Virus record (IMG/VR): IMGVR_UViG_3300032236_002285
Location: 248,001-312,000 of that record
DNA length: 64,000 nt
Reading direction: 5' to 3' (one strand)
In this document: piece by piece, positions 7,365 to 25,911 of the stretch
Position numbering within the stretch: the stretch's first letter is position 1
Layout of the letters: each line of letters opens with the position of its first letter
The notes under the pieces: generated by a model
What the model was told of the DNA's origin: nothing
The model's database searches: none
Seen by the model: the letters and a program-made list of their open reading frames with translations, nothing else
Position numbers and translations under genes: made by a program

Positions 7365-7504
7365 TATCTTTGTATAACAAAACGAAAAAATAAATTACAA
7401 ATTAAAAAAAGATTAAAAAAGATTAAAAAAATTAGGTAGAATTAAAACTTTTTCTTAATTTTGTATAAAATAAGTCAAAAGGGACAAAAACTTTTTAATA
7501 TATA
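7365..7504 (+). promoter_or_regulatory. promoter block of tRNA operon 1: two Bacteroidota sigma70-type -7 boxes and a late motif
   Basis: TATCTTTG 7365-7372, TAATTTTG 7456-7463, TAATATATA 7496-7504; 7441-7504 closely matches 23022-23086. Confidence 0.7.
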
Positions 7505-7509
7505 CAACA

Positions 7510-7617
7510 ATGACAACAATGAATTTAAATATGAATATGAATCTAACGGTGGTGCTTAATACATTATGTATTAGACGCTCTGAGGGCTTCGTCATATCTA
7601 AACGATTTGTTGACTAA
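7510..7617 (+). CDS. attenuator leader peptide 1, MTTMNLNMNMNLTVVLNTLCIRRSEGFVISKRFVD
   Basis: ATG 5 nt after the late motif; TAA at 7615-7617; overlaps the antiterminator strand 7579-7591. Confidence 0.7.
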   Translation: MTTMNLNMNMNLTVVLNTLCIRRSEGFVISKRFVD

Positions 7618-7649
7618 ATGTATAACAAATTTTATAAAGGATAAAATCG

Positions 7650-7682
7650 AAACCCTCAGACAAAAAATCTGAGGGTTTTTTT
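7650..7682 (+). terminator. attenuator terminator upstream of tRNA array 1
   Basis: AAACCCTCAGA-caaaaaa-TCTGAGGGTTT plus T-run; 5' arm can instead pair with 7579-7591 (12 of 13 bp). Confidence 0.85.
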
Positions 7683-7697
7683 ATATGTAATAAATTT

Positions 7698-7769
7698 GGG
7701 GTGGTAGCTTAATGGTGAAGCAATCGGCTGTTAACCGATAGATTATAGGTTCGAATCCTATCCACCCCG
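7698..7769 (+). tRNA. tRNA-Asn(GTT)
   Basis: GGGGTGG/CCACCCC acceptor; ATCGG-CTGTTAA-CCGAT; TTCGAAT T-loop. Confidence 0.9.
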
Positions 7770-7780
7770 CAAAAATAAAC

Positions 7781-7865
7781 TGGTAGGTACCCGAGCGGTC
7801 TTCAGGGACTAGTCTGATATACTAGGTGAGAAATCACGACGTGGGTTCAAATCCCACCCTACCAA
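7781..7865 (+). tRNA. tRNA-Ile(GAT) with long variable arm
   Basis: TGGTAGG/CCTACCA; CTAGT-CTGATAT-ACTAG; variable hairpin GTGA-GAAA-TCAC. Confidence 0.8.
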
Positions 7866-7871
7866 CAACAT

Positions 7872-7943
7872 TCACTGGTAGCTCAGAGGCAGAGCAACCG
7901 CCTGTTAAGCGGTAGGTCGGGATATCGTAATTCACCCAGTGAG
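7872..7943 (+). tRNA. tRNA-Asn(GTT), irregular T-arm
   Basis: TCACTGG/CCAGTGA, G73; CCGC-CTGTTAA-GCGG; T-stem poorly paired. Confidence 0.75.
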
Positions 7944-7949
7944 CAAAAC

Positions 7950-8028
7950 GCCTCAGTAGCCGAGGTCGCCTTCTAAGCGACTAATCGTAACGGAACTGAA
8001 AATGTAGGTTCGAATCCTACCTGGGGTA
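7950..8028 (+). tRNA. atypical tRNA-Arg(TCT): D-arm nearly absent, long variable region
   Basis: GCCTCAG/CTGGGGT; GTCGC-CTTCTAA-GCGAC; GTAGG-TTCGAAT-CCTAC. Confidence 0.65.
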
Positions 8029-8083
8029 CAAAAAAAAGGGACACTAGTCTTATTAATATATAAGTAAAATGTAGGTTTGTATT

Positions 8084-8914
8084 ATGTTAGACTTTGAAAA
8101 TATTCAAAAAGACTTTGAAAGTGGTCTTTTTTATCAAAAAGATATACTAATTAAGTATAGTATATCAATTAAAAAATTAAGAACTTTTGTAAAAAAAGGT
8201 TTATTGAATAAAGAAAATTGGAAATTAAAAAAATATGAAGTAAAAAGAGAAACAAAAAAGTTAATATCAGAAGGTAGAAAAAAATGGTTGAAAGAAAATA
8301 CATCTAAACATCCTTGGAGAAATGGAAATAAATCTAAGCCTTGTGAGGAGTTTAAGAAATTCTTAAAAAGTAGGAATATTTTCTTTTTGGAAGAGGTTAT
8401 GATTTCAAAAGAAAGATTCTATTCGGTTGATATTTTAATACCTGAGTTCACTTCGGTTGTAGAAATTAATGGTAATCAACATTATAAATCTAATGGAGAA
8501 CTTAAAGATTACTATAGTGAAAGAAATAGTTTTATAAAAAATAAAGGATGGTCGATATATGAAGTACACTACTCAATTGTTTATAATTTAGAAATGTGTG
8601 ATTCTATTTTAGAAAATATTAAAAATAATAATAAAATCGATATACCATTTTATATAAAAAATAAGAAAGAAAAAAAATATAAGAATAGGGAAGAGTACTG
8701 GAATAAAAGAAAAATTAATAAATTGAATAGTTATAGTGAAAGATTAAATGAATTAAAAAACAGTAGTATAGATTTTAAAAAGATTGGATGGGTTAAACTA
8801 GCATCTGAGATATTAAAAGTTAAAAATGTAAATAAACTATTAAAAGAAATCGATCCAGAATTTTATAAAAATTGTTATAAAAGAAAACAAAATGCCGAGG
8901 TGGTGGAATGGTAG
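8084..8914 (+). CDS. DUF559/Vsr-like PD-(D/E)XK homing endonuclease inserted in tRNA array
   Basis: FYSVDILIP..VVEINGNQHY..RNSFI..GWSIYEVHY; Lys-rich; last 21 nt overlap tRNA-Leu. Confidence 0.7.
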   Translation: MLDFENIQKDFESGLFYQKDILIKYSISIKKLRTFVKKGLLNKENWKLKKYEVKRETKKLISEGRKKWLKENTSKHPWRNGNKSKPCEEFKKFLKSRNIFFLEEVMISKERFYSVDILIPEFTSVVEINGNQHYKSNGELKDYYSERNSFIKNKGWSIYEVHYSIVYNLEMCDSILENIKNNNKIDIPFYIKNKKEKKYKNREEYWNKRKINKLNSYSERLNELKNSSIDFKKIGWVKLASEILKVKNVNKLLKEIDPEFYKNCYKRKQNAEVVEW

Positions 8915-8976
8915 ACACGCTAGCCTTAGAAGCTAGTACCCGCAAGGGTGTGTGGGTTCGAGTCCCACCCTCGGTA
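8894..8976 (+). tRNA. tRNA-Leu(TAG)
   Basis: GCCGAGG/CCTCGGT; CTAGC-CTTAGAA-GCTAG; type II variable arm. Confidence 0.9.
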
Positions 8977-9001
8977 CTGAAGTGAAACGAAAGTTCACTA
9001 C
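8977..9001 (+). repeat. 25-nt tRNA-Leu 3' trailer, copy 1
   Basis: CTGAAGTGAAACGAAAGTTCACTAC, identical to 9810-9834; GAAA-capped hairpin. Confidence 0.9.
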
Positions 9002-9010
9002 AAAAAAAAT

Positions 9011-9096
9011 TGATAGGTTGCCGTAGTGGCCGAACGGTCCGGACTGTTAATCCGGTGACGAATAGTCCATCGTGGGTTCGAATCCCACCCTGTCAG
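9011..9096 (+). tRNA. tRNA-Asn(GTT) with long variable region
   Basis: TGATAGG/CCTGTCA, G73; CCGGA-CTGTTAA-TCCGG. Confidence 0.8.
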
Positions 9097-9103
9097 CAAA
9101 TAT

Positions 9104-9175
9104 AGTCCTGTAGCTTAATGGGAAAGCGCTTGCCTTACATGCAAGAGAGAGTCGGATCGTTACCGACCAGGACTA
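9104..9175 (+). tRNA. tRNA-Val(TAC)
   Basis: AGTCCTG/CAGGACT; CTTGC-CTTACAT-GCAAG; T-loop ATCGTTA. Confidence 0.85.
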
Positions 9176-9181
9176 CAAAAT

Positions 9182-9255
9182 TGGACTGTAGCTCATTTGG
9201 TTAGAGCGCCACGCTGATACCGTGGAGGTGGTCGGATCGTAACCGACCAGTCCAA
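9182..9255 (+). tRNA. tRNA-Ile(GAT)
   Basis: TGGACTG/CAGTCCA; CCACG-CTGATAC-CGTGG; T-loop ATCGTAA. Confidence 0.85.
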
Positions 9256-9261
9256 CAACAA

Positions 9262-9345
9262 GGTACTATGGCCGAGTGGAGTCTTTAAGACGGGAGGCAG
9301 TGGTCTGCAAAACTTCTCACACTGGTTCGAATCCAGTTAGTACCT
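9262..9345 (+). tRNA. tRNA-Cys(GCA) with expanded D-loop
   Basis: GGTACTA/TAGTACC, U73; loop CTGCAAA; extra GTCT-TTA-AGAC hairpin in the D-loop. Confidence 0.75.
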
Positions 9346-9350
9346 CAAAC

Positions 9351-9422
9351 GCTTCTTAAGCATTAATGGTGATGCACTAGTCTTGTAAACTAGAGAAATC
9401 GGATCGTTACCGGTAAGAAGCT
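9351..9422 (+). tRNA. tRNA-Thr(TGT)
   Basis: GCTTCTT/AAGAAGC; CTAGT-CTTGTAA-ACTAG. Confidence 0.85.
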
Positions 9423-9428
9423 CTAAAT

Positions 9429-9500
9429 TGTTCTGTAGCTCAATGGTAGAGCGCTTCTGTGACATGGAAGAGGTAGTCGGATCGTTACCGACCAGGACAA
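9429..9500 (+). tRNA. tRNA-Val(GAC)
   Basis: TGTTCTG/CAGGACA; CTTCT-GTGACAT-GGAAG. Confidence 0.8.
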
Positions 9501-9525
9501 CAAAATAATGGATGGTGATTAAGAG

Positions 9526-9598
9526 TGTTACTTCGTGAAATGGTATACACATTTGTCTTAAAAACAAACTTTTGAGGGTTCAAGTCCCTCAGTAAAAT
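9526..9598 (+). tRNA. degenerate tRNA-Leu(TAA)-like element lacking the variable arm
   Basis: Leu-type D-arm GTGAAATGGTATACAC; TTTGT-CTTAAAA-ACAAA; GAGGG-TTCAAGT-CCCTC; acceptor stem has a mismatch. Confidence 0.55.
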
Positions 9599-9625
9599 CA
9601 CTCTTTGAACTTTCCTCCATTATAT

Positions 9626-9709
9626 GCCGATGTGGCTCAGTGGCGACAGCACTGGTTTTGTAAACCAGAGACGAATAGTCCAACGGGGGTTCGAGTCCCT
9701 CCATCGGCT
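9626..9709 (+). tRNA. tRNA-Thr(TGT) with long variable region
   Basis: GCCGATG/CATCGGC; CTGGT-TTTGTAA-ACCAG. Confidence 0.85.
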
Positions 9710-9724
9710 CAAAATAAATCACCT

Positions 9725-9809
9725 GCCTGGGTGGTGGAACGGTAGACACGCTGGACTTAAAATCCAGTGGGCAGTAATGCCCGTGAGGGTTCGAGTCCCT
9801 CTCCAGGTA
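9725..9809 (+). tRNA. tRNA-Leu(TAA)
   Basis: GCCTGGG/TCCAGGT; CTGGA-CTTAAAA-TCCAG; type II arm. Confidence 0.9.
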
Positions 9810-9834
9810 CTGAAGTGAAACGAAAGTTCACTAC
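9810..9834 (+). repeat. 25-nt tRNA-Leu 3' trailer, copy 2
   Basis: Identical to 8977-9001. Confidence 0.9.
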
Positions 9835-9840
9835 TAAATT

Positions 9841-9911
9841 ATTGGGATAGTTTAATGGTAAATCGTGGGCCTGATATGCCCGTGTTCTTGGTTCGATTCC
9901 AGGTCTCAATA
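9841..9911 (+). tRNA. tRNA-Ile(GAT)
   Basis: ATTGGGA/TCTCAAT; TGGGC-CTGATAT-GCCCG. Confidence 0.8.
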
Positions 9912-9916
9912 CAAAC

Positions 9917-9988
9917 TTCGATATGGCCTATTGGTAGGGTGCAGGGGGACATGTTCCTGAGGACTTGGTTCGATTCCAGGTATCGATA
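9917..9988 (+). tRNA. tRNA-like element, anticodon undetermined (8-nt loop GGACATGT)
   Basis: Acceptor, D- and T-arms present (CTTGG-TTCGATT-CCAGG); non-canonical anticodon loop. Confidence 0.5.
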
Positions 9989-9995
9989 CAAACAT

Positions 9996-10082
9996 CGCGG
10001 GGTAGAGTAGAGGTCAAACTCACTGGGCTCATAACCCAGGGTTGCGCAAGTGACACGTCAGGTTCGAATCCTGCCCCCGCTA
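9996..10082 (+). tRNA. initiator-type tRNA-Met(CAT) with long variable arm
   Basis: Unpaired C1:U72; three consecutive G-C pairs in CTGGG-CTCATAA-CCCAG; extra GTTGC-GCAA-GTGAC hairpin. Confidence 0.8.
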
Positions 10083-10088
10083 CAACAA

Positions 10089-10161
10089 GCAGTCATCGTA
10101 TAGTAGGTGATTACACCACCTTGGTACGGTGGAGATTCCGGTTCGAATCCGGGTGATTGCT
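10089..10161 (+). tRNA. tRNA-Thr(GGT)
   Basis: GCAGTCA/TGATTGC; CCACC-TTGGTAC-GGTGG. Confidence 0.85.
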
Positions 10162-10166
10162 CAAAT

Positions 10167-10247
10167 GCCCAGATGGTGGAATGGTATACACGCCAGTCTA
10201 AGAAGCTGGTTCCTTCGGGATTGAGAGTTCGAGTCTCTCTCTGGGCA
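10167..10247 (+). tRNA. tRNA-Leu(AAG)
   Basis: GCCCAGA/TCTGGGC; CCAGT-CTAAGAA-GCTGG; Leu-type D-arm and variable arm. Confidence 0.85.
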
Positions 10248-10255
10248 CAACATAC

Positions 10256-10340
10256 GCCGGTGTGATCCGATGTGGTAATGGAGTTCGGCTCATATCCGAA
10301 TTGGTTTATCCTATTGCTGGTTCGACTCCAGCCACCGGTA
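10256..10340 (+). tRNA. tRNA-CAT (elongator Met or lysidine Ile2), long variable region
   Basis: GCCGGTG/CACCGGT; TTCGG-CTCATAT-CCGAA. Confidence 0.75.
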
Positions 10341-10345
10341 CAAAT

Positions 10346-10426
10346 GTCAGAATGGTGGAATGGTATACACGCTAGTTTCAAAAACTAGTGCCGAAAGGTA
10401 TGAGAGTTCAAATCTCTCTTCTGATA
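10346..10426 (+). tRNA. tRNA-Leu(CAA)
   Basis: GTCAGAA/TTCTGAT; CTAGT-TTCAAAA-ACTAG. Confidence 0.88.
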
Positions 10427-10448
10427 CTCGATAAAATAAAAAATAAAA

Positions 10449-10730
10449 ATGGAAAAGATTATCGACATCGTTAGAGATAACGTTGCAAGATTCGACTGGG
10501 CTTCTGAAGGAGTCCTCTACTACAAAGTAGAAACTGAAAAATATATCTATCACTTCCCAGTAGATATGAATAACAAAGAAGATGTGGGAACAGCTAATTT
10601 TGAATCAGAACATAAGGCTATAAATCTTATGAGATATTTAAGAAAAGCATCAGAAAACTTAGAAAAAATTAAAAACGATTCAGGTACGCCTGATTGGAAA
10701 AAGACATTAAGAGTTACACAAAAAGTATGA
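10449..10730 (+). CDS. hypothetical phage protein
   Basis: 93-aa ORF; its TGA overlaps the LeuRS ATG (ATGA). Confidence 0.6.
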   Translation: MEKIIDIVRDNVARFDWASEGVLYYKVETEKYIYHFPVDMNNKEDVGTANFESEHKAINLMRYLRKASENLEKIKNDSGTPDWKKTLRVTQKV

Positions 10731-11992
10731 AAGATGAAAAGTATATATGCGTTATGTTTCCTTACCCAAGTGGTTCGGGATTGCATGTAGGTCACTTTTA
10801 TAATTATGCTATAATTGATTCTTATTGTAGATACTTTAAATACAAAGGTCAACAAGTTTTTCAACCTTTTGGTTATGATGCCTTTGGTTTGCCGGCTGAA
10901 AACTATGCTAGAAAAGTAGGTCGTGATGCTAAAGATGTTACCTATGAAAACATCAGTCAATTTAGAAAACAGATGGAAAAGATGGATACCAACTATCAAG
11001 AAATGTTGGTAACATCTGATCCTTCTTATCAAAAATGGACACAATGGTTGTTTTTGAAATTGAAAGAACATGGCTTGGCTTATAAAAAAGATGGTGAAGT
11101 AAATTGGTGTCCTTCTTGTGAAACCGTATTGGCTCGTGAACAAGTTAAATCTGATTGTTGTGAAAGATGTTCAACTAAGGTAGAAATGAAAACAATGAAT
11201 CAGTGGTACTTTAAGATTACTGATTATAAAGAACGTTTGATTAAAAACTTGGATTGGATAGATTATCCAAAATCAACTATTAACGCGCAAAGAATGTGGT
11301 TGGAAAACTTGCACGATTGGTGTGTTTCTCGTCAAAGAAAATGGGGCTGTCCAATTCCAATAGAAGGTGAAACCGATACAATGGATACATTTGTAGATTC
11401 TTCATTTTACTATGTTAGATATTGTGATGCTACTAATGATAATGAATTGTGTGCTAAAGATAAATATAAACAAGTAGATGTTTATGTTGGTGGTAATGAA
11501 CACGCTTGTATGCACTTGATTTATGCTCGTTTTATTAATATGTTTTTGTATGATATTGGTGTTGTTTCAGAGGAAGAACCATTTAAGAAAGTTATACATC
11601 AAGGTATAATTTTGAACGAAGGTGAAAAAATGTCTAAAACAAAAGGTAATGTTATTAATCCAGATGATTATGACTCTGATGAATTGAGATTTTATATGAT
11701 GTTTATTGGTCATTATTTTGATGGTGGTTCTTGGTCTGACCAAAATATAGCTGGTATTAAAAGATTTATTAGTCGTTTTAAGGAGTGGATGTCAAGAGAA
11801 GGTTCTGATACTTTTGATATTGAATCATTTAAGAAAAAAATATTTAACTACACTGAGAGTTTTAAGTTTAATAAAGTTGTTAGTGAGTTTATGACAATAG
11901 TTAATCAAAATAGAACTAAAAACATAACACCTGAGATAAAAAAAGAATTGATTGAATTGATTAAGGTGTATATGCCTGGAATTAAAATTTAA
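10727..11992 (+). CDS. leuS: minimal leucyl-tRNA synthetase lacking the CP1 editing domain
   Basis: MFPYPSGSGLHVGH (HIGH), FGYDAFGLPAENYA, DWCVSRQRKWG, ETDTMDTFVDSSFYY, EKMSKTKGN; about 421 aa; start moved to ATG 10727. Confidence 0.9.
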   Translation: MKDEKYICVMFPYPSGSGLHVGHFYNYAIIDSYCRYFKYKGQQVFQPFGYDAFGLPAENYARKVGRDAKDVTYENISQFRKQMEKMDTNYQEMLVTSDPSYQKWTQWLFLKLKEHGLAYKKDGEVNWCPSCETVLAREQVKSDCCERCSTKVEMKTMNQWYFKITDYKERLIKNLDWIDYPKSTINAQRMWLENLHDWCVSRQRKWGCPIPIEGETDTMDTFVDSSFYYVRYCDATNDNELCAKDKYKQVDVYVGGNEHACMHLIYARFINMFLYDIGVVSEEEPFKKVIHQGIILNEGEKMSKTKGNVINPDDYDSDELRFYMMFIGHYFDGGSWSDQNIAGIKRFISRFKEWMSREGSDTFDIESFKKKIFNYTESFKFNKVVSEFMTIVNQNRTKNITPEIKKELIELIKVYMPGIKI

Positions 11993-14834: not shown

Positions 14835-14866
14835 TAAATTTATATTAAAAAATAATATATATGGAC

Positions 14867-16486
14867 ATGAAATACATTAAAACTAGAAATAGATTTCTTG
14901 CTGAATCAAAAGGTGAAATGAGCGACAACGCTCTTCATACACTTGCGACTCATGATGATGGACAATCTCCTGATGTTCAAAAAAGTTTGGATGCACTTGA
15001 CGAGGTTTCTCCTAAAGGTAAAGTGGTAACTCGTTTTGCTCCTTCACCAACAGGATTTTTACATATCGGAGGTGTTCGTACAGCTCTTTACAACTACTTG
15101 TTTGCTAAAAAACACGGTGGTATCTTTTATGTTCGTATTGAAGATACTGACCAAAAACGTTTTGTAGGCGATGCTGAAAAATATATTCAAGACGCTTTAG
15201 AATGGTGTGGTATTGACCCAGATTATGCACCTTGGAAAGGTGGTCCTAATGGACCTTACCGCCAATCGGAAAGAGATTATTCTGGTCATATTCAAACTCT
15301 TTTAGATAAGGGTATGGCTTACTATGCTTTTGATACAGAAGATGATATGGTTAAAGTAAGAGCTGAAAATGCTCACTTTGCTTACGATACTAAAACTCGT
15401 ATGTCAATGAAGAACTCACTCTCTTTATCTAAAGAAGAAGTTGATGCACTTCTTGCTGCTAATACTCCATTTGTAATTCGCTTCAAAACACCAGAAAATA
15501 GAACTATCACCGTTAATGATGTAATTCGTGGTGAAGTTAGTTTGAATACAAATCAAACTGATGATAAAGTTTTGGTTAAATCAAATGGTATTCCTACATA
15601 TCATATGGCTAACGTATGTGACGACCACGATATGGGAACTACTCACGTTATTCGTGGTGAAGAATGGTTGCCTTCAACTCCACTTCACTTAATGTTATAT
15701 GAAGCATTTGGTTGGGAAGCTCCTACATTTGCTCACCTACCTCTAATTTTGAATCCTGATGGTAAAGGTAAGTTGTCTAAACGTAAAGCTTTAGCTTTAG
15801 GTATTCCAGCTTTCCCAATGGGTGGTGAAGGTGAAGATGATAAAGGTCAAAAAGTAAAGTATCTTGGTTTCAAAGATGAAGGTTTTGAACCACAAGCTAT
15901 GTTGAATTTCTTGGTGCTTTTAGGTTGGTCCCCAACAGATACTCAAGAACTTATGACTATGGCTGACATGATTTCTAAATTTGACTTAGCTCATGTTCAT
16001 AAGGCTGGTGCTCGTTTTGATGTTGAAAAAGCTAAACACTTTAATGCTCAACACTTGAACACTTATAGAAGTGATGAAGAAATTCTTTCACATATTGATA
16101 TGGGTGATACCTATCATTACTCACCAGAAAATCTTTCTAAGATTGTGGATATCTGTAAAAAGAGAGCAGTCTTTACTAAAGATTTACAAGCTGTTGCTGA
16201 TATCTTCTTTAAGCCAATTGTGATTAAAGAAACAGATGTTAAGTTATTAACTGATGATTACAAAAAAGTATTCTCAGTTTTTGTAACTAAGTCAATTGAT
16301 TGGACGGCTGAAACTATTAAACAAACAATTCACGACATTTGTCAAGAAATAGGTGTTAAAATGGGTAAGATAATGCCTGCTTTAAGATTGGCTATTGCTG
16401 GTGGATTACCAGGTCCAGATTTGGCAACAACAATGGAAATAATTGGTAGGGATGAAACCTTAATAAGAATTAAAAACACTTTATAA
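14867..16486 (+). CDS. gltX: glutamyl-tRNA synthetase with ~50-aa N-terminal extension carrying the capsid-targeting-like tag
   Basis: VVTRFAPSPTGFLHIGG, RIEDTD, HVIRGEEW, KLSKRK; starts MKYIKTRNRFLAES 5 nt after TAATATATA (14853-14861). Confidence 0.92.
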   Translation: MKYIKTRNRFLAESKGEMSDNALHTLATHDDGQSPDVQKSLDALDEVSPKGKVVTRFAPSPTGFLHIGGVRTALYNYLFAKKHGGIFYVRIEDTDQKRFVGDAEKYIQDALEWCGIDPDYAPWKGGPNGPYRQSERDYSGHIQTLLDKGMAYYAFDTEDDMVKVRAENAHFAYDTKTRMSMKNSLSLSKEEVDALLAANTPFVIRFKTPENRTITVNDVIRGEVSLNTNQTDDKVLVKSNGIPTYHMANVCDDHDMGTTHVIRGEEWLPSTPLHLMLYEAFGWEAPTFAHLPLILNPDGKGKLSKRKALALGIPAFPMGGEGEDDKGQKVKYLGFKDEGFEPQAMLNFLVLLGWSPTDTQELMTMADMISKFDLAHVHKAGARFDVEKAKHFNAQHLNTYRSDEEILSHIDMGDTYHYSPENLSKIVDICKKRAVFTKDLQAVADIFFKPIVIKETDVKLLTDDYKKVFSVFVTKSIDWTAETIKQTIHDICQEIGVKMGKIMPALRLAIAGGLPGPDLATTMEIIGRDETLIRIKNTL

Positions 16487-22551: not shown

Positions 22552-22576
22552 GTTTATAAAAATTAATATATAATGT

Positions 22577-22951
22577 ATGAAATATTTACAAACAATAAAC
22601 GAATATCAAAGAACTGTAGGTTTTAGATATTCTGAACCAAAAGAAAAATATAAAGTATCTTTATTATGTAAAGGTCAAGATATCAATGAAGATAAGATAA
22701 ATGAAGGTTTATCAAAAGTTAGTGAATTGACTTATGACTCAAAGTCTATTGAAGTAAATTTACTTGATGAAGGTATGATTGCTGAACTACCAGAAATTGG
22801 ATCTGTAGAGATTAGCGCAATTGTTAGTTTTAATGTAACTCTTTACAATGAGAAAGAAGTAAATGGTGTTGTTAGTGAATTAGGTCAAAAGTTATCAAAA
22901 TTTGATATTGAAATATTAGATTTTAAATCAAAAGAAAATTTGGAAGATTAA
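22577..22951 (+). CDS. hypothetical protein, MKYLQTINEY tag family
   Basis: Late motif at 22564-22572; N-terminal tag. Confidence 0.6.
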   Translation: MKYLQTINEYQRTVGFRYSEPKEKYKVSLLCKGQDINEDKINEGLSKVSELTYDSKSIEVNLLDEGMIAELPEIGSVEISAIVSFNVTLYNEKEVNGVVSELGQKLSKFDIEILDFKSKENLED

Positions 22952-23086
22952 AATATTATTTCTATCTTTGTATTCACAAAACAAAAAAGAATTAAAAAAA
23001 AATTAAAAAAATATTTGACAAATTAAAACTTTGTTGTATATTTGTATAAAATAAGAACAAAAGGAACAAAAACTTTTTAATATATA
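22939..23086 (+). promoter_or_regulatory. promoter block of tRNA operon 2: two sigma70-type promoters and a late motif
   Basis: TTTG22939/TATCTTTG22963; TTTG23014/TATATTTG23037; TAATATATA 23078-23086; homologous to 7441-7504. Confidence 0.75.
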
Positions 23087-23091
23087 CAGAA

Positions 23092-23190
23092 ATGAAAAAC
23101 TTAAACTTAAATATCGTTAACCCTCAACCGCAAGTTGTAATCGATCAGGATCCTGGTTCGAAAGGGGCTAACTATGTGGTTTTAAGTTAA
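23092..23190 (+). CDS. attenuator leader peptide 2, MKNLNLNIVNPQPQVVIDQDPGSKGANYVVLS
   Basis: ATG 5 nt after the late motif; TAA at 23188-23190; Pro/Gln/Asp-rich core. Confidence 0.6.
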   Translation: MKNLNLNIVNPQPQVVIDQDPGSKGANYVVLS

Positions 23191-23213
23191 AGATATTATA
23201 ACTATGAAACATT

Positions 23214-23246
23214 ACCCAGTTAGTCGAAAGATTAACTGGGTTTTTT
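23214..23246 (+). terminator. attenuator terminator upstream of the Asp/Pro tRNA block
   Basis: ACCCAGTTAGTC-gaaa-GATTAACTGGGT plus T-run; 23166-23173 GGCTAACT can pair with 23218-23225. Confidence 0.85.
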
Positions 23247-23257
23247 GTTTTAGATAC

Positions 23258-23329
23258 AGTCCGTGGGTATGTTGGTATGAATAACCTCCTGTCACGGGGA
23301 AGAAGCCGGTTCGATTCCGGTACGGACTG
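23258..23329 (+). tRNA. tRNA-Asp(GTC)
   Basis: AGTCCGT/ACGGACT, G73; loop CTGTCAC. Confidence 0.85.
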
Positions 23330-23334
23330 CAAAA

Positions 23335-23408
23335 CGAGAAGTGACTAAGGTTTTAAGCACGCGCCGTCTGGAGCGGTGAGTTAGCAGGTTCGATTCCTGT
23401 CTTCTCGA
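23335..23408 (+). tRNA. tRNA-Pro(TGG)-like with atypical anticodon loop
   Basis: C1:G72 and A73 (CGAGAAG/CTTCTCG-A); CGCCG-TCTGGAG-CGGTG has C33 and A37. Confidence 0.6.
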
Positions 23409-23471
23409 CAACAAGTAGCTTTTGAGGCGAAAAATACTCTTTAGAGAATAGAGTAAAACAATTCTCAAAAT

Positions 23472-23544
23472 GGTCTCGTGGTTGAATGGTTACAATACCA
23501 CCCTGTCACGGTGCGAGATGCCGGTTCGATTCCGGTCGAGACCG
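23472..23544 (+). tRNA. tRNA-Asp(GTC)
   Basis: GGTCTCG/CGAGACC, G73; loop CTGTCAC. Confidence 0.9.
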
Positions 23545-23549
23545 CAAAA

Positions 23550-23620
23550 GGACATATAGCTTAAAAGGAAAGAGTACCTCCAGTGGGAGGGGAGTCTTGG
23601 TTCAAGTCCAGGTATGTCCG
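23550..23620 (+). tRNA. tRNA-like element, anticodon undetermined (shortened loop)
   Basis: GGACATA/TATGTCC, G73; D- and T-arms intact; CCTCC-AGTG-GGAGG. Confidence 0.5.
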
Positions 23621-23626
23621 CAAAAA

Positions 23627-23698
23627 GGTCTATTAGGGTAGTGGTTATCCTTCCCGACTGTCTATCGGGAGACACCGGTTCGAATCCGGTATAGACCG
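23627..23698 (+). tRNA. tRNA-Asp(GTC)
   Basis: GGTCTAT/ATAGACC; CCCGA-CTGTCTA-TCGGG. Confidence 0.88.
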
Positions 23699-23745
23699 CA
23701 AATGGGCTTTTCAAGACAAAAAGTTTGTAGATTACTTAATGAAAC

Positions 23746-23820
23746 GGTCTAGTGGTGAAGTGGCTATCATATCTGCCTGTCACGCAGAAGTAGAGGGATC
23801 GAAACCCTTCTAGACCGCCA
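23746..23820 (+). tRNA. tRNA-Asp(GTC), CCA encoded
   Basis: GGTCTAG/CTAGACC-GCCA; TCTGC-CTGTCAC-GCAGA. Confidence 0.9.
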
Positions 23821-23826
23821 AAAATT

Positions 23827-23901
23827 CGGGGTGTAGCGTAGTCCGGTTATCGCGCATGCTTTGGGAGCATGAAATCGTAGGTTCGAATCCTGCCACCCCG
23901 A
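23827..23901 (+). tRNA. tRNA-Pro(TGG)
   Basis: CGGGGTG/CACCCCG-A; CATGC-TTTGGGA-GCATG. Confidence 0.92.
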
Positions 23902-23932
23902 CAAAGAAACAAAATATTAATAAATAGAAATT

Positions 23933-23986
23933 ATGAGAACAACAACACAATACCAGCAACAACAACAAATTAATCCAACGGATTGA
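23933..23986 (+). CDS. attenuator leader peptide 3, MRTTTQYQQQQQINPTD
   Basis: Six Gln codons (CAA x5, CAG x1) in 17; TGA lies inside segment 2 of a 1:2/2:3/3:4 hairpin set. Confidence 0.85.
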   Translation: MRTTTQYQQQQQINPTD

Positions 23987-24014
23987 TAACGGTATCGTAT
24001 TGTCTAAACTTTAC

Positions 24015-24048
24015 AAACCCTATTCAATCTGATTGAGTAGGGTTTTTT
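24015..24048 (+). terminator. attenuator terminator upstream of tRNA-Gln x3 and glnS
   Basis: AAACCCTATTCAA-tctga-TTGAGTAGGGTTT plus T-run, ending 2 nt before tRNA-Gln. Confidence 0.88.
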
Positions 24049-24050
24049 AT

Positions 24051-24121
24051 TGTCTGATGGTGTAGTGGTAGCACAAGGGTCTTTGATCCCCTTAGTTCAG
24101 GTCCGATTCCTGATCAGACAA
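24051..24121 (+). tRNA. tRNA-Gln(TTG)
   Basis: TGTCTGA/TCAGACA; loop CTTTGAT; T-loop TCCGATT. Confidence 0.8.
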
Positions 24122-24128
24122 CAAATAT

Positions 24129-24210
24129 TGAGGAATAGAATAATGGCAGTTCACCCGCCTTTGAAGCGGAGAGAGAAATCTCAGTGTAGGTTCGAGTCCT
24201 ACTTCCTCAA
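24129..24210 (+). tRNA. tRNA-Gln(TTG) with long variable arm
   Basis: TGAGGAA/TTCCTCA; CCGC-CTTTGAA-GCGG; GAGA-GAAA-TCTC arm. Confidence 0.82.
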
Positions 24211-24216
24211 CAAAAT

Positions 24217-24288
24217 TGCTTTATAGTATATGGGTTAACATATCTGTCTTTGAAACAGATGAACTTGGTTCGAGTCCAAGTGGAGCAA
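24217..24288 (+). tRNA. tRNA-Gln(TTG)
   Basis: TGCTTTA/TGGAGCA; TCTGT-CTTTGAA-ACAGA. Confidence 0.85.
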
Positions 24289-24306
24289 CAAAAAATAATA
24301 ACTACT

Positions 24307-25911
24307 ATGAATTTCATTGAAGAAAAAATAATTGAAAAAGGTAATCTTGATAAACTAACATTGAGATTTCCACCAGAACCAAATGGCTATTTACATATTG
24401 GTCACGCTAAATCCATTATCTTAAATTTTGGTTTAGCTGAAAAATATAATAGACCTTGTAACTTGAGATTTGATGATACTAACCCAACTACCGAAGATAC
24501 TCACTTTGTTGAGTCAATTATAAAAGATATAGAATGGTTAGGTTACAAACCCGCCAATATTTTCTATACATCTGATTATTTTGATTTTCTTTATGAATGT
24601 GCTATTACTTTAATTAAAAAAGGATTAGCTTATGTTGATGATTCAACATCAGAAGAAATTGCTAACTTAAAAGGAACACCAACTTCACCTGGTAAAGATT
24701 CACCTTATAAGTCAAGAAGTGTTGATGAAAATTTAGACCTATTTAATAGAATGAGATTAGGTGAATTTGTAGAAGGTTCTAAAATTCTTAGAGCTAATAT
24801 TGATATGACTTCTCCTAATATGATTTTAAGAGATCCAGTTCTTTATAGAATAATATCTAAGTCACACCACAGAACTGGTGATACTTGGAAGATTTATCCA
24901 ATGTATGACTTTGCTCATCCACTTTCAGATTATAAAGAAGGTATTACCGATTCTTTATGTACTTTAGAATTTGAAGTTCACAGACCTTTATATATGTGGG
25001 TTTTAGAAAATTGTGATTTAGAAAATCCGCTTCCAGAAGAAACTGAGTTTGCTCGTTTGAACATTGACTATACGGTTATGTCAAAGAGAAAATTAAAAAG
25101 ATTAGTTGAAGAAGGATTTGTAGATGGTTGGGATGATCCAAGAATGCCAACTATTTCTGGTTTAAGAAGAAGAGGTTTTACTCCAAATGCTATTAAAGAT
25201 TTTTGTGATAGAATTTCTGTTACAAGAAAAGATGGTATTGTTTCTTATTTACTTTTAGAAGAATGTTTAAGAACTGATTTGAACATAGTTACCAATAGAT
25301 TAATGGGTGTTATGGATCCAGTTAAGTTAGTTATTACTAATTGGGATAGCGGAACTGAAATGGTTGAAGTTGAAAATAATCCTGGTGATGAAAGTGCTGG
25401 TACAAGAATGATTCCTTTTAGTGGTGAACTATTTATTGAAAGAGAAGATTTCAGAGAAGAAGCTAATAATAAATTTCATAGATTGAAATTAGGTGGTGAA
25501 GTAAGATTAAAAGGCGCTTATGTTATTATGGCTAACGAAGTTATCAAAGATGAATTTGGAGAAATCACTGAGATTAGATGTACTTACGATCCTTTAACAA
25601 GATCAGGTATGTCTATTGAAAGAAAGATTAAAGGAACTATTCACTGGGTATCTGCTGAACACGGAGTTAGAATGAATGTAAATGAATATGATAGATTATT
25701 TAATGATGGATCACCAGATAAAAATGAAGATGATTTTATCAATTATATCAACCCAGATTCACTTATAATTAATGATAAGGCAATCTTTGAACCTCACGTT
25801 TTAAACGTCAAGGAACCAGTTCAAATGATGAGAAAAGGGTATTATATTTTAGATACTGATGGTAAAAGTTTCAATAAAACGGTAAGTTTAAAAGAAGGTT
25901 GGGTAGGTTAA
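24307..25911 (+). CDS. glnS: glutaminyl-tRNA synthetase
   Basis: RFPPEPNGYLHIGHAKS, RFDDTNP, IYPMYDFAH, SLCTLEF, VMSKRKL, GWDDPRMPTISGLRRRG; start moved to ATG 24307 (ORF-track start lies inside a tRNA). Confidence 0.95.
   Translation: MNFIEEKIIEKGNLDKLTLRFPPEPNGYLHIGHAKSIILNFGLAEKYNRPCNLRFDDTNPTTEDTHFVESIIKDIEWLGYKPANIFYTSDYFDFLYECAITLIKKGLAYVDDSTSEEIANLKGTPTSPGKDSPYKSRSVDENLDLFNRMRLGEFVEGSKILRANIDMTSPNMILRDPVLYRIISKSHHRTGDTWKIYPMYDFAHPLSDYKEGITDSLCTLEFEVHRPLYMWVLENCDLENPLPEETEFARLNIDYTVMSKRKLKRLVEEGFVDGWDDPRMPTISGLRRRGFTPNAIKDFCDRISVTRKDGIVSYLLLEECLRTDLNIVTNRLMGVMDPVKLVITNWDSGTEMVEVENNPGDESAGTRMIPFSGELFIEREDFREEANNKFHRLKLGGEVRLKGAYVIMANEVIKDEFGEITEIRCTYDPLTRSGMSIERKIKGTIHWVSAEHGVRMNVNEYDRLFNDGSPDKNEDDFINYINPDSLIINDKAIFEPHVLNVKEPVQMMRKGYYILDTDGKSFNKTVSLKEGWVG

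Follow-up and report, generated by a model that had tools for sequence, protein, structure and literature searches.

Positions 23,933 to 25,911 of the window (the whole 64,000-nucleotide stretch of IMG/VR record IMGVR_UViG_3300032236_002285 analysed here, 64 kb) carry a short open reading frame rich in glutamine codons, a terminator hairpin, three tRNA-Gln(UUG) genes and glnS, in that order (Table 1). The sequence comes from a huge bacteriophage. Such phages carry dozens of tRNA genes and several aminoacyl-tRNA synthetases, yet how these genes are regulated is largely unknown. An earlier note had proposed that the arrangement forms a glutamine attenuator with three alternative pairings (1:2, 2:3 and 3:4), and the sequence elements and foldings described there were confirmed.

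Organisation of the tRNA-Gln and glnS locus

The 17-codon leader ORF encodes MRTTTQYQQQQQINPTD, with six Gln among 16 residues. Gln makes up 2.9% of codons, giving a binomial P = 4e-6. It is the only run of five or more Gln codons in all six frames of the window, whereas an order-2 Markov model expects 0.07 runs of four or more and about 0 of five or more; the run is thus not chance. The earlier note also pointed out that five of the six codons are the cognate CAA. However, this equals the genome-wide usage (481 CAA : 63 CAG, 88%) and carries no extra information. The leader has no Shine-Dalgarno motif, which is the norm in this phage, where 1 of 64 long ORFs has one, and in Bacteroidetes (PMC7366714).

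Table 1. Features of the leader region and its surroundings, in window coordinates.
Feature	Coordinates	Strand	Details
Likely promoter of the enclosing operon	23014-23044	+	TTTG, 19 nt, TAtaTTTG (Bacteroidetes -33/-7 type, consensus as quoted in PMC7366714); also matches a sigma-70 pattern at 11 of 12 positions; function inferred
Upstream sibling attenuator	23092-23241	+	Leader 23092-23190 (core NPQPQVVIDQDP), terminator 23214-23241; placed before the tRNA-Asp/Pro block 23258-23902
Leader peptide ORF	23933-23986	+	16 aa plus TGA stop (23984-23986, inside segment 2)
Regulatory Gln codons	23948-23968	+	CAA 23948-50, (TAC), CAG 23954-56, CAA x4 23957-68
Segment 1	23942-23976	+	5' strand of the anti-antiterminator; inner arm 23969-76, outer strand 23942-54
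Segment 2	23979-24003	+	Pairs with segment 1 (23980-87 and 23991-24003) or segment 3 (23979-86 and 23991-93)
Segment 3	24015-24028	+	5' arm of the terminator and 3' partner of the antiterminator
Segment 4	24032-24048	+	3' arm of the terminator (24032-24045) and T-run (24043-24048)
Inner 1:2 hairpin	23969-76 with 23980-87		8 bp, -4.8 kcal/mol, z -1.6, 12/200 shuffles
Longer two-tier 1:2 helix	23942-54 with 23991-24003		Encloses the inner hairpin in folds of the whole leader
2:3 antiterminator	23979-86 with 24024-31; 23991-93 with 24017-19		-13.5 kcal/mol, z -3.0, 2/200 shuffles
3:4 terminator	24015-24045		14 bp, 3-nt loop, -16.7 kcal/mol, z -5.1, followed by TTTTTTATT
tRNA-Gln(UUG) genes	24051-24122, 24129-24211, 24217-24289	+	ARAGORN; Rfam tRNA at 52-57 bits; the second is 83 nt with a long variable arm
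glnS, glutaminyl-tRNA synthetase	24307-25911	+	534 aa; TIGR00440 at 668 bits against a cut-off of 426; tRNA-synt_1c and both anticodon-binding domains (PF00749, PF03950, PF20974)

The terminator tail ends 2 nt before the first tRNA gene, which leaves no room for a promoter, and glnS starts 17 nt after the last tRNA. These genes can therefore be expressed only by reading through the terminator. A sigma-70-like promoter hit within the leader (23983-24010, 9 of 12 positions) was rejected, as the scan found 74 such sites against 70.7 expected and a start there would run straight into the terminator. An Rfam scan of the whole window at the gathering threshold returned only tRNAs, and a permissive scan of 22900-24320 (E <= 10) added only noise (PyrR, rimP and NsiR1; E 7-9).

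Alternative pairings and their conservation in related phages

The ORF-terminator-tRNA-Gln layout recurs in 14 other loci (given below as L plus a number) of related huge, Mahaphage-type, Bacteroidetes-infecting phages. In all fifteen loci, the window's own included, a short ORF with 4-7 Gln codons is followed by a terminator and T-run, directly before tRNA-Gln arrays, except in L011, where the unit precedes an ORF and glnS. In the loci found through glnS, GlnRS identity runs from 100% down to 57%. The 13 different peptides are alike mainly in the Gln run, which shows synonymous CAA/CAG changes. Two relatives lack the unit: L010, although it has tRNA-Gln genes, and L013. The earlier note placed the switch within a larger operon (operon 2), but this nesting holds for the present lineage only; in other phages the unit stands alone, in L153 behind its own Bacteroidetes-type promoter motif.

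Twelve loci were folded with a ribosome parked on the last Gln codon and the 3' arm not yet transcribed. In all twelve, the minimum-energy fold pairs a segment starting 11-14 nt after the Gln run with the 5' arm of the terminator (z -1.5 to -5.7 against shuffles, 10 of 12 below -2.3). Terminator energies were -15 to -18 kcal/mol in the 12 relatives folded, and the leader stop codon lies inside or downstream of segment 2. Without a ribosome, 6-10 of the 9-13 segment-2 bases pair upstream instead, with partners inside or just after the Gln run in all 13 loci examined. The inner 1:2 hairpin is weak on its own and is paired in 77% of cells in relatives.

Segment 2 also tracks the terminator sequence. 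In a swap test over 13 loci, cognate duplexes average -13.0 kcal/mol and non-cognate ones -9.9, a difference matched by none of 20000 permutations, and the lineages with different terminators (L008, L011, L014 and L007) rank their own segment 2 first of 13. As MAFFT could not align the divergent leaders (L005, L008 and L014) in register, column-wise covariation was counted only for the sub-family sharing the GAUUGA motif. In its 10 aligned relatives, 96% of cells in the upper 2:3 helix are paired, against 11-47% when the partner is slid. Within this sub-family, however, the helix is conserved more than it co-varies, only 2 pairs having changes on both sides, so that real co-variation rests on the few divergent lineages. 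The antiterminator of L005 is marginal (z -1.5 in the parked-ribosome folds and -1.3 in the swap test).

Control loci lack the leader. None of 78 bacterial-type glnS loci (52-57% identity) has a short ORF with three or more consecutive Gln residues within 1.5 kb upstream. A loose leader motif gave 120 hits in viral contigs, of which only 3 are followed by any tRNA, all 3 being tRNA-Gln arrays. CAG codons in leaders were also compared with the presence of tRNA-Gln(CUG) in the array; a hand count gave 8 of 40 codons with that tRNA and 3 of 33 without, which is suggestive but too few to count.

The same design recurs with other amino acids. Two sibling attenuators in the window, and others in relatives, carry leaders whose residues match the tRNA arrays that follow them, and homologues of the upstream sibling leader precede Asp/Pro/Gln tRNAs in L001, L009, L012 and L015. 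A search with the promoter/5'-UTR motif shared by operons 1 and 2 found only 6 places, one of them a new array leader (L108); the motif also precedes ordinary genes and is not specific to attenuators.

A proposed glutamine-specific attenuator and its alternatives

The best explanation, to which we assign a probability of about 0.82 on computational evidence only, is a ribosome-mediated (leader-peptide) transcription attenuator specific for glutamine. In this model, transcription enters from the upstream tRNA-Asp/Pro block of the same operon and a ribosome starts on the leader. When charged Gln-tRNA(Gln) is plentiful, the ribosome runs to the UGA stop and covers segment 2, segments 3 and 4 form the terminator, and RNA polymerase stops at about 24046-24050. 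When it is scarce, the ribosome stalls on the last Gln codons (about 23960-23968), covers segment 1 and leaves segment 2 free from 23979 to pair with the 5' arm of the terminator as soon as that arm is made, so that polymerase reads into the tRNA-Gln genes and glnS. The outcome would be negative feedback, whereby the phage makes more tRNA-Gln and GlnRS only when decoding of Gln codons becomes limiting in the infected cell. The response to Gln-tRNA level, the coupling of transcription and translation in the (probably Bacteroidetes) host and the ribosome footprint (about 15 nt downstream of the P site) are inferred, and the model presumes a polymerase that obeys intrinsic terminators. Only stalls on roughly the last three or four Gln codons would mask segment 1. 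Furthermore, with the full RNA present the terminator is always the more stable fold; the switch must therefore be kinetic, as in trp, although no polymerase pause site was identified. Signs of leader-peptide attenuation are reported in Flavobacterium (PMC9723704).

Other readings are very unlikely. The stability of the terminator in every full-length fold, and the similar terminators that follow other units in the phage, would also suit a plain constitutive or leaky terminator, or an RNA-processing hairpin, separating the Asp/Pro from the Gln tRNAs, with the short ORF an unrelated conserved micro-protein or untranslated. This sits poorly with the absence of room for a promoter, with peptides conserved only in the Gln run, with a segment at a fixed distance after that run that is complementary to the terminator's 5' arm and changes with it, and with control loci that lack the ORF. 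Somewhat less improbable, though still very unlikely, is an attenuator that reports general translation capacity, that is, whether any ribosome follows the polymerase closely. The geometry also predicts termination when no ribosome loads and when ribosomes move fast, and a phage that takes over translation might want such a general gauge. The Gln run, however, is the one conserved feature of 13 otherwise different peptides and always precedes tRNA-Gln or glnS, while sibling leaders carry the residues of their own tRNA arrays.

A switch that needs no translation appears as remote as the plain terminator, whether by direct binding of uncharged tRNA-Gln (T-box-like), of glutamine (glutamine riboswitch), or of GlnRS to a tRNA-like operator. 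Synthetase genes are controlled by T-boxes in Firmicutes (PMC1262725) and by an operator mimic in E. coli thrS, but neither Rfam scan matched a T-box (RF00230), glnA RNA or Downstream-peptide motif, the hairpin loops hold no UUG anticodon mimic, and a reading frame with ATG, a Gln run and a stop inside segment 2 is kept across lineages. Least likely is that the nascent poly-Gln peptide itself arrests the ribosome in response to some ligand, as TnaC or SecM does. Leader peptides acting inside the exit tunnel are known, but arrest peptides are conserved in sequence and length, whereas here the flanks vary freely and the run of 4-7 residues is interrupted by Y, V or L; sibling leaders with mixed residues matching their arrays fit codon sensing better.

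A broader hypothesis, more likely than not in our view, is that the Gln unit is one module of a clade-wide system in which huge Bacteroidetes phages place each of their tRNA gene arrays, and the linked synthetases, behind a leader-peptide attenuator whose codons spell the amino acids of that array. Modules seen so far are Gln; Pro/Asp/Gln; Asn/Met/Leu/Thr/Val, sometimes also Cys/Ile/Arg; and possibly Phe/Trp/Tyr. The phage would then measure charged-tRNA supply one codon family at a time and top up only what its AT-rich genes exhaust. The same circuit would switch on replacement tRNAs automatically if a host defence cuts or depletes a given tRNA; in this reading, the Gln attenuator of L011 drives an RNA-repair-type HAD protein together with glnS.

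Comparison with known systems

The locus suggests that these tRNA and synthetase genes are not simply switched on, but appear to be under demand-driven feedback built from one of the oldest known bacterial control devices. Full-text literature searches found no description of leader-peptide control of phage tRNA genes or of a Gln leader, although absence from the literature searched is not proof of absence. The switch is small (about 120 nt), modular and present in many variants, and could serve as a natural sensor of the charging state of specific tRNAs.

The closest parallels are the trpL/hisL-type attenuators of enterobacterial amino-acid biosynthesis operons, which likewise have a short ORF with a run of cognate codons, four segments with 1:2, 2:3 and 3:4 alternatives, a stop codon at or in segment 2, and an intrinsic terminator directly before the regulated genes. 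The predicted logic, read-through when the charged tRNA is scarce, is that modelled in PMC1183508. Here the amino acid is glutamine, for which we know of no such leader, the regulated genes are tRNA genes plus a synthetase and not biosynthetic enzymes, and the element is carried by a phage and has no Shine-Dalgarno motif. It matches none of the Rfam leader families (His_leader, Trp_leader, Leu_leader, Thr_leader and similar); it works like these families, as far as its predicted logic goes, without being a sequence member of any of them.

In the pheM-pheST attenuator of E. coli and the predicted trpS and leuS attenuators of Streptomyces (PMC1262725), a classical attenuator with cognate codons controls an aminoacyl-tRNA synthetase gene, so the product acts on the very signal that is sensed. 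Those systems are cellular and control only the synthetase, whereas here the tRNA genes come first, the synthetase follows in the same transcript and the amino acid differs; there is no sequence relationship. The sibling leaders in the window, which mix several residue types (N, M, L, T, V; and P, Q, D), each corresponding to a product of the operon, recall the multi-amino-acid leaders of thr (Thr/Ile) and ilvGMEDA (Ile/Leu/Val), but their products are tRNAs, not enzymes, and the Gln unit itself is predicted to sense a single amino acid. T-box riboswitches before synthetase genes of Firmicutes share the biological purpose, namely to sense the charging state of one tRNA and switch a terminator/antiterminator pair before an aaRS gene. 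A T-box, however, binds uncharged tRNA directly and needs no translation, whereas here the proposed sensor is a translating ribosome.

The glutamine unit and its alternative structures

The window is AT-rich (29.9% GC) and comes from a huge phage, its own contig (locus L002) being a 476 kb IMG/VR viral contig. The nearest GenBank record is LR756502.1, a 642 kb uncultured phage whose glnS region is 77% identical. Phage genomes of that size from that study were placed in the ‘Mahaphage’ clade and predicted to infect Bacteroidetes (PMC7162821). Two observations fit such a host: only 1 of 64 long ORFs has a Shine-Dalgarno-like motif, and the enclosing operon starts behind a TTTG-19 nt-TAtaTTTG motif, which matches the Bacteroidetes consensus (PMC7366714).

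A 148-nt spacer separates tRNA-Pro from the first tRNA-Gln. It holds a short ORF, MRTTTQYQQQQQINPTD-stop, and a 14-bp hairpin followed by TTTTTTATT. Three tRNA-Gln(UUG) genes follow after 2 nt, and glnS, a clear GlnRS by Pfam and NCBIfam, follows the last tRNA after 17 nt. The coordinates and reading of the earlier note, which had described a glutamine attenuator before the three tRNAs and glnS, are correct. One of the tRNA-Gln(UUG) genes, conserved in most related loci, is unusually long and folds with an extra stem in the variable region; several other tRNAs of normally short types (Ile, Asn, Thr, Met) in the window are also long, the whole set spanning 83-87 nt. ARAGORN further reported tRNAs with odd anticodon loops, a 4-base ‘acat’ and a 2-base ‘gt’. 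Rfam scores the second as a tRNA (45 bits), and they may be unusual decoders or degenerate copies.

Coordinates of the glutamine unit, its surroundings and related features. Positions are those of the window unless preceded by an L-number, which denotes a locus recovered in the searches.
Feature	Position	Remarks
Promoter and 5' untranslated regions of the two tRNA operons	7440-7509; 23020-23091	clearly homologous to each other
Motif before ATG (examples)	7489-7509; 23071-23091; 22563-22576	like TAATATATA(C)
Leader before the Asn/Ile/Leu/Val/Thr/Met array	7510-7617	unit 7510-7690; T-run at 7676
Asn/Ile/Leu/Val/Thr/Met tRNA array	7698-10427
Long tRNAs	7781-7866; 9011-9097; 9626-9710; 9997-10081; 10256-10341; 24129-24211	the last is tRNA-Gln(UUG)
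tRNAs with odd anticodon loops	9917-9989; 23550-23621	4-base ‘acat’ and 2-base ‘gt’
LeuRS-like class I synthetase	10694-11992	432 aa
GluRS	14861-16486
Promoter motif of the enclosing operon	23014-23044	TTTG-19 nt-TAtaTTTG
Leader before the Asp/Pro block	23092-23190	unit 23092-23241
Segment complementary to the terminator 5' arm in that unit	23163-78
Terminator of that unit	23214-41
tRNA-Pro	23827-23902
Gln leader ORF	23933-23986	UGA stop at 23984-86
GAUUGA hexamer	23981-23986
Inner 1:2 hairpin	23969-76 with 23980-87
Outer helix	23942-54 with 23991-24003
2:3 pairing	23979-86 with 24024-31; 23991-93 with 24017-19
Terminator hairpin	24015-24045	14 bp
First tRNA-Gln(UUG)	from 24051
glnS	24307-25911
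Homologues of the Asn/Ile/Leu/Val/Thr/Met leader	L028:50-160; L108
Homologues of the Asp/Pro leader	L001:2070-2177; L009:759-854; L012:705-800; L015:727-816
Gln leader and terminator, HAD ORF and glnS	L011:377-2526
ORF between tRNA-Gln array and glnS	L029:611-1486	weak HNH endonuclease match
Aromatic-rich short ORF and terminator	L014:4450-4610	directly before tRNA-Trp

The free leader folds into a two-tier helix, comprising an inner hairpin and an outer helix, with the terminator forming alongside it. When the RNA is cut before the 3' arm of the terminator, the best fold is instead the 2:3 pairing (-13.5 kcal/mol, z -3.0). Segment 2 can therefore pair either backwards or with the 5' arm of the terminator. 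The terminator alone is -16.7 kcal/mol (z -5.1), whereas the inner 1:2 hairpin alone is weak (-4.8 kcal/mol, z -1.6). With the whole RNA present the terminator always wins, and any switch must therefore be kinetic, as in the trp leader.

The geometry was inferred from typical ribosome footprints. On this basis, a ribosome with the last Gln codon in its A site reaches to about 23978, which covers segment 1 and frees segment 2 exactly from 23979, where the antiterminator helix begins. A ribosome at the UGA stop covers segment 2, leaving segments 3 and 4 to form the terminator. Most of the Gln leaders end in GAU-UGA, although TGA is a minority stop codon in the phage (9 of 69 long ORFs). The GAUUGA hexamer is also the core of the 2:3 pairing, and a slow UGA stop might help to hold the ribosome on segment 2.

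To assess whether the leader could arise by chance, we examined codon usage. Gln makes up 2.9% of codons in the long ORFs of the window, and the leader holds the only run of >=5 Gln codons in any of the six frames, where a Markov model expects 0.07 runs of >=4. Six Gln among 16 residues has P = 4e-6. The CAA bias (5 of 6), which the earlier note had cited in support, is not informative, because 88% of all Gln codons here are CAA.

Related loci and conservation of structure

A scan of viral contigs with the GlnRS protein returned 26 loci. GenBank gave one more (L001), a metagenome scan gave L029, and a motif scan gave L153 and L210. Fifteen loci, the window's own included, carry a short ORF with 4-7 Gln codons followed by a strong terminator with a T-run. 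This unit sits directly before a tRNA-Gln array, except in locus L011, where it precedes no tRNA but an ORF with a HAD domain of the ‘Swiss Army Knife’ RNA-repair type (PF18143, E = 1.6e-23), followed by glnS. In L029 the ORF between the tRNA-Gln array and glnS may be a homing endonuclease insertion.

The 13 distinct peptides share little beyond the Gln run and, often, a C-terminal Asp, as exemplified by MTTSFQQQQQQQINRTD, MVNITINIQQQQQQQTLNKGSGIALS, MKNLTLQQQQQMIKLD and MSQTQTHIQQLQQQFDTKG. Within the run the changes are synonymous (CAA/CAG) or single interruptions. This is the pattern expected of a regulatory leader, and not that of a functional micro-protein or of a non-coding repeat. Leaders of arrays that include a tRNA-Gln(CUG) (L001, L005, L008, L012, L014, L029) tend to contain CAG codons more often (8 of 40 Gln codons) than leaders of arrays with only UUG tRNAs (L003, L006, L015; 3 of 33), though this is a hand count and the numbers are too small to judge. 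In some phages the unit follows ORFs rather than tRNAs, and in L153 it has its own TAtaTTTG promoter motif. The description of the unit in the earlier note as nested inside operon 2 therefore applies to this lineage only.

For 12 loci, we masked the RNA up to 10 nt past the last Gln codon and withheld the 3' arm. In all twelve the minimum-energy fold pairs a segment beginning 11-14 nt after the Gln run with the 5' arm of the terminator (z -1.5 to -5.7). Without masking, the same bases pair upstream, with partners inside or just after the Gln run, in 13 of 13 loci. Terminator sequences differ between lineages; for example, L008 and L014 have GCCUGG-type stems and L012 has CCUAUCAGUC, and segment 2 differs with them. 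In a swap test, cognate segment-2/segment-3 duplexes average -13.0 kcal/mol against -9.9 for non-cognate ones, a difference matched by no permutation out of 20000, and L007, L008, L011 and L014 rank their own partner first of 13. In the ten sequences that share the GAUUGA motif and align, the upper 2:3 helix is paired in 96% of cells, against 11-47% for slid partners, though it is mostly invariant, with 2 pairs changed on both sides. The inner 1:2 hairpin is paired in 77% of cells.

As controls, we examined 78 metagenomic glnS loci with 52-57% identity (bacterial-type, no tRNA-Gln upstream), none of which has a short ORF with three or more consecutive Gln residues in the 1.5 kb upstream. The loose motif CAACAACAA-N8-20-AGATTGAT gave 120 hits in viral contigs, of which 117 are followed by no tRNA, while the 3 that are followed by one all have tRNA-Gln arrays. 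Relatives without the unit exist, namely L010 and L013, and in L028 glnS follows another array directly.

Further units of the same build in the window and in other phages

The window holds two more units of the same build. One leader, MTTMNLNMNMNLTVVLNTLCIRRSEGFVISKRFVD, begins MTTMNLNMNMNLTVVLNTLCI, is followed by a terminator and precedes the Asn/Ile/Leu/Val/Thr/Met tRNA array and a LeuRS-like gene. Nineteen of the first 20 residues after Met belong to amino acids of that array. The LeuRS-like gene, which follows the array with its six tRNA-Leu genes, encodes a class I synthetase most like LeuRS, but at about half its length and below the model cut-off (399 bits against 548, matched in four pieces), and appears to lack large parts of a normal LeuRS. 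The second leader, with the core NPQPQVVIDQDP rich in P, Q and D, is followed by its own terminator and precedes the tRNA-Asp x4 / Pro block. In both, a downstream segment of the leader region is complementary to the 5' arm of the terminator. The homologous promoter and 5' untranslated regions of the two tRNA operons read roughly ...TTTGTATAAAATAAG-ACAAAAGG-ACAAAAACTTTTTAATATATACA.... In addition, a motif like TAATATATA(C) lies about 4-12 nt before the ATG of many genes and of these two leaders, and could be a phage promoter that gives nearly leaderless mRNAs, or a translation-start signal.

Homologous leaders in other phages vary but keep the residue types of their arrays. For example, PQQQPDQDPD stands before Pro/Asp tRNAs, and L028 and L108 have ...NTLCIR... 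leaders before arrays that also contain Arg tRNAs, and Cys in L028. In L014, FNCFWFPYYPF stands before tRNA-Trp and may represent a Phe/Trp/Tyr version of the same switch; the locus ends soon after. The binomial enrichments are strong; however, the ‘core’ stretches were chosen after the sequences had been seen, and those P values are thus optimistic.

Interpretation and comparison with known systems

The best-supported reading, which has yet to be tested at the bench, is a glutamine-specific, ribosome-mediated attenuator that gives negative feedback on the supply of charged tRNA-Gln, to which we assign a probability of about 0.8. A plain terminator with an unrelated ORF does not explain the missing promoter, the conserved run or the co-varying segment 2, nor does a general translation gauge explain why the run is Gln exactly where the tRNAs are Gln. 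T-box, glutamine-riboswitch and operator-mimic models find no support in Rfam or in the loops, and an arrest-peptide model fits poorly with the free variation of the peptide.

As far as our literature searches reach, three things are new: the amino acid (Gln), the targets (tRNA genes followed by the synthetase) and the carrier (a phage). The unit is not a sequence member of any Rfam leader family. Notwithstanding this, it is predicted to work like the trp/his attenuators, as modelled in PMC1183508, and in purpose it is most like the pheST attenuator and the predicted trpS/leuS attenuators of Streptomyces (PMC1262725).
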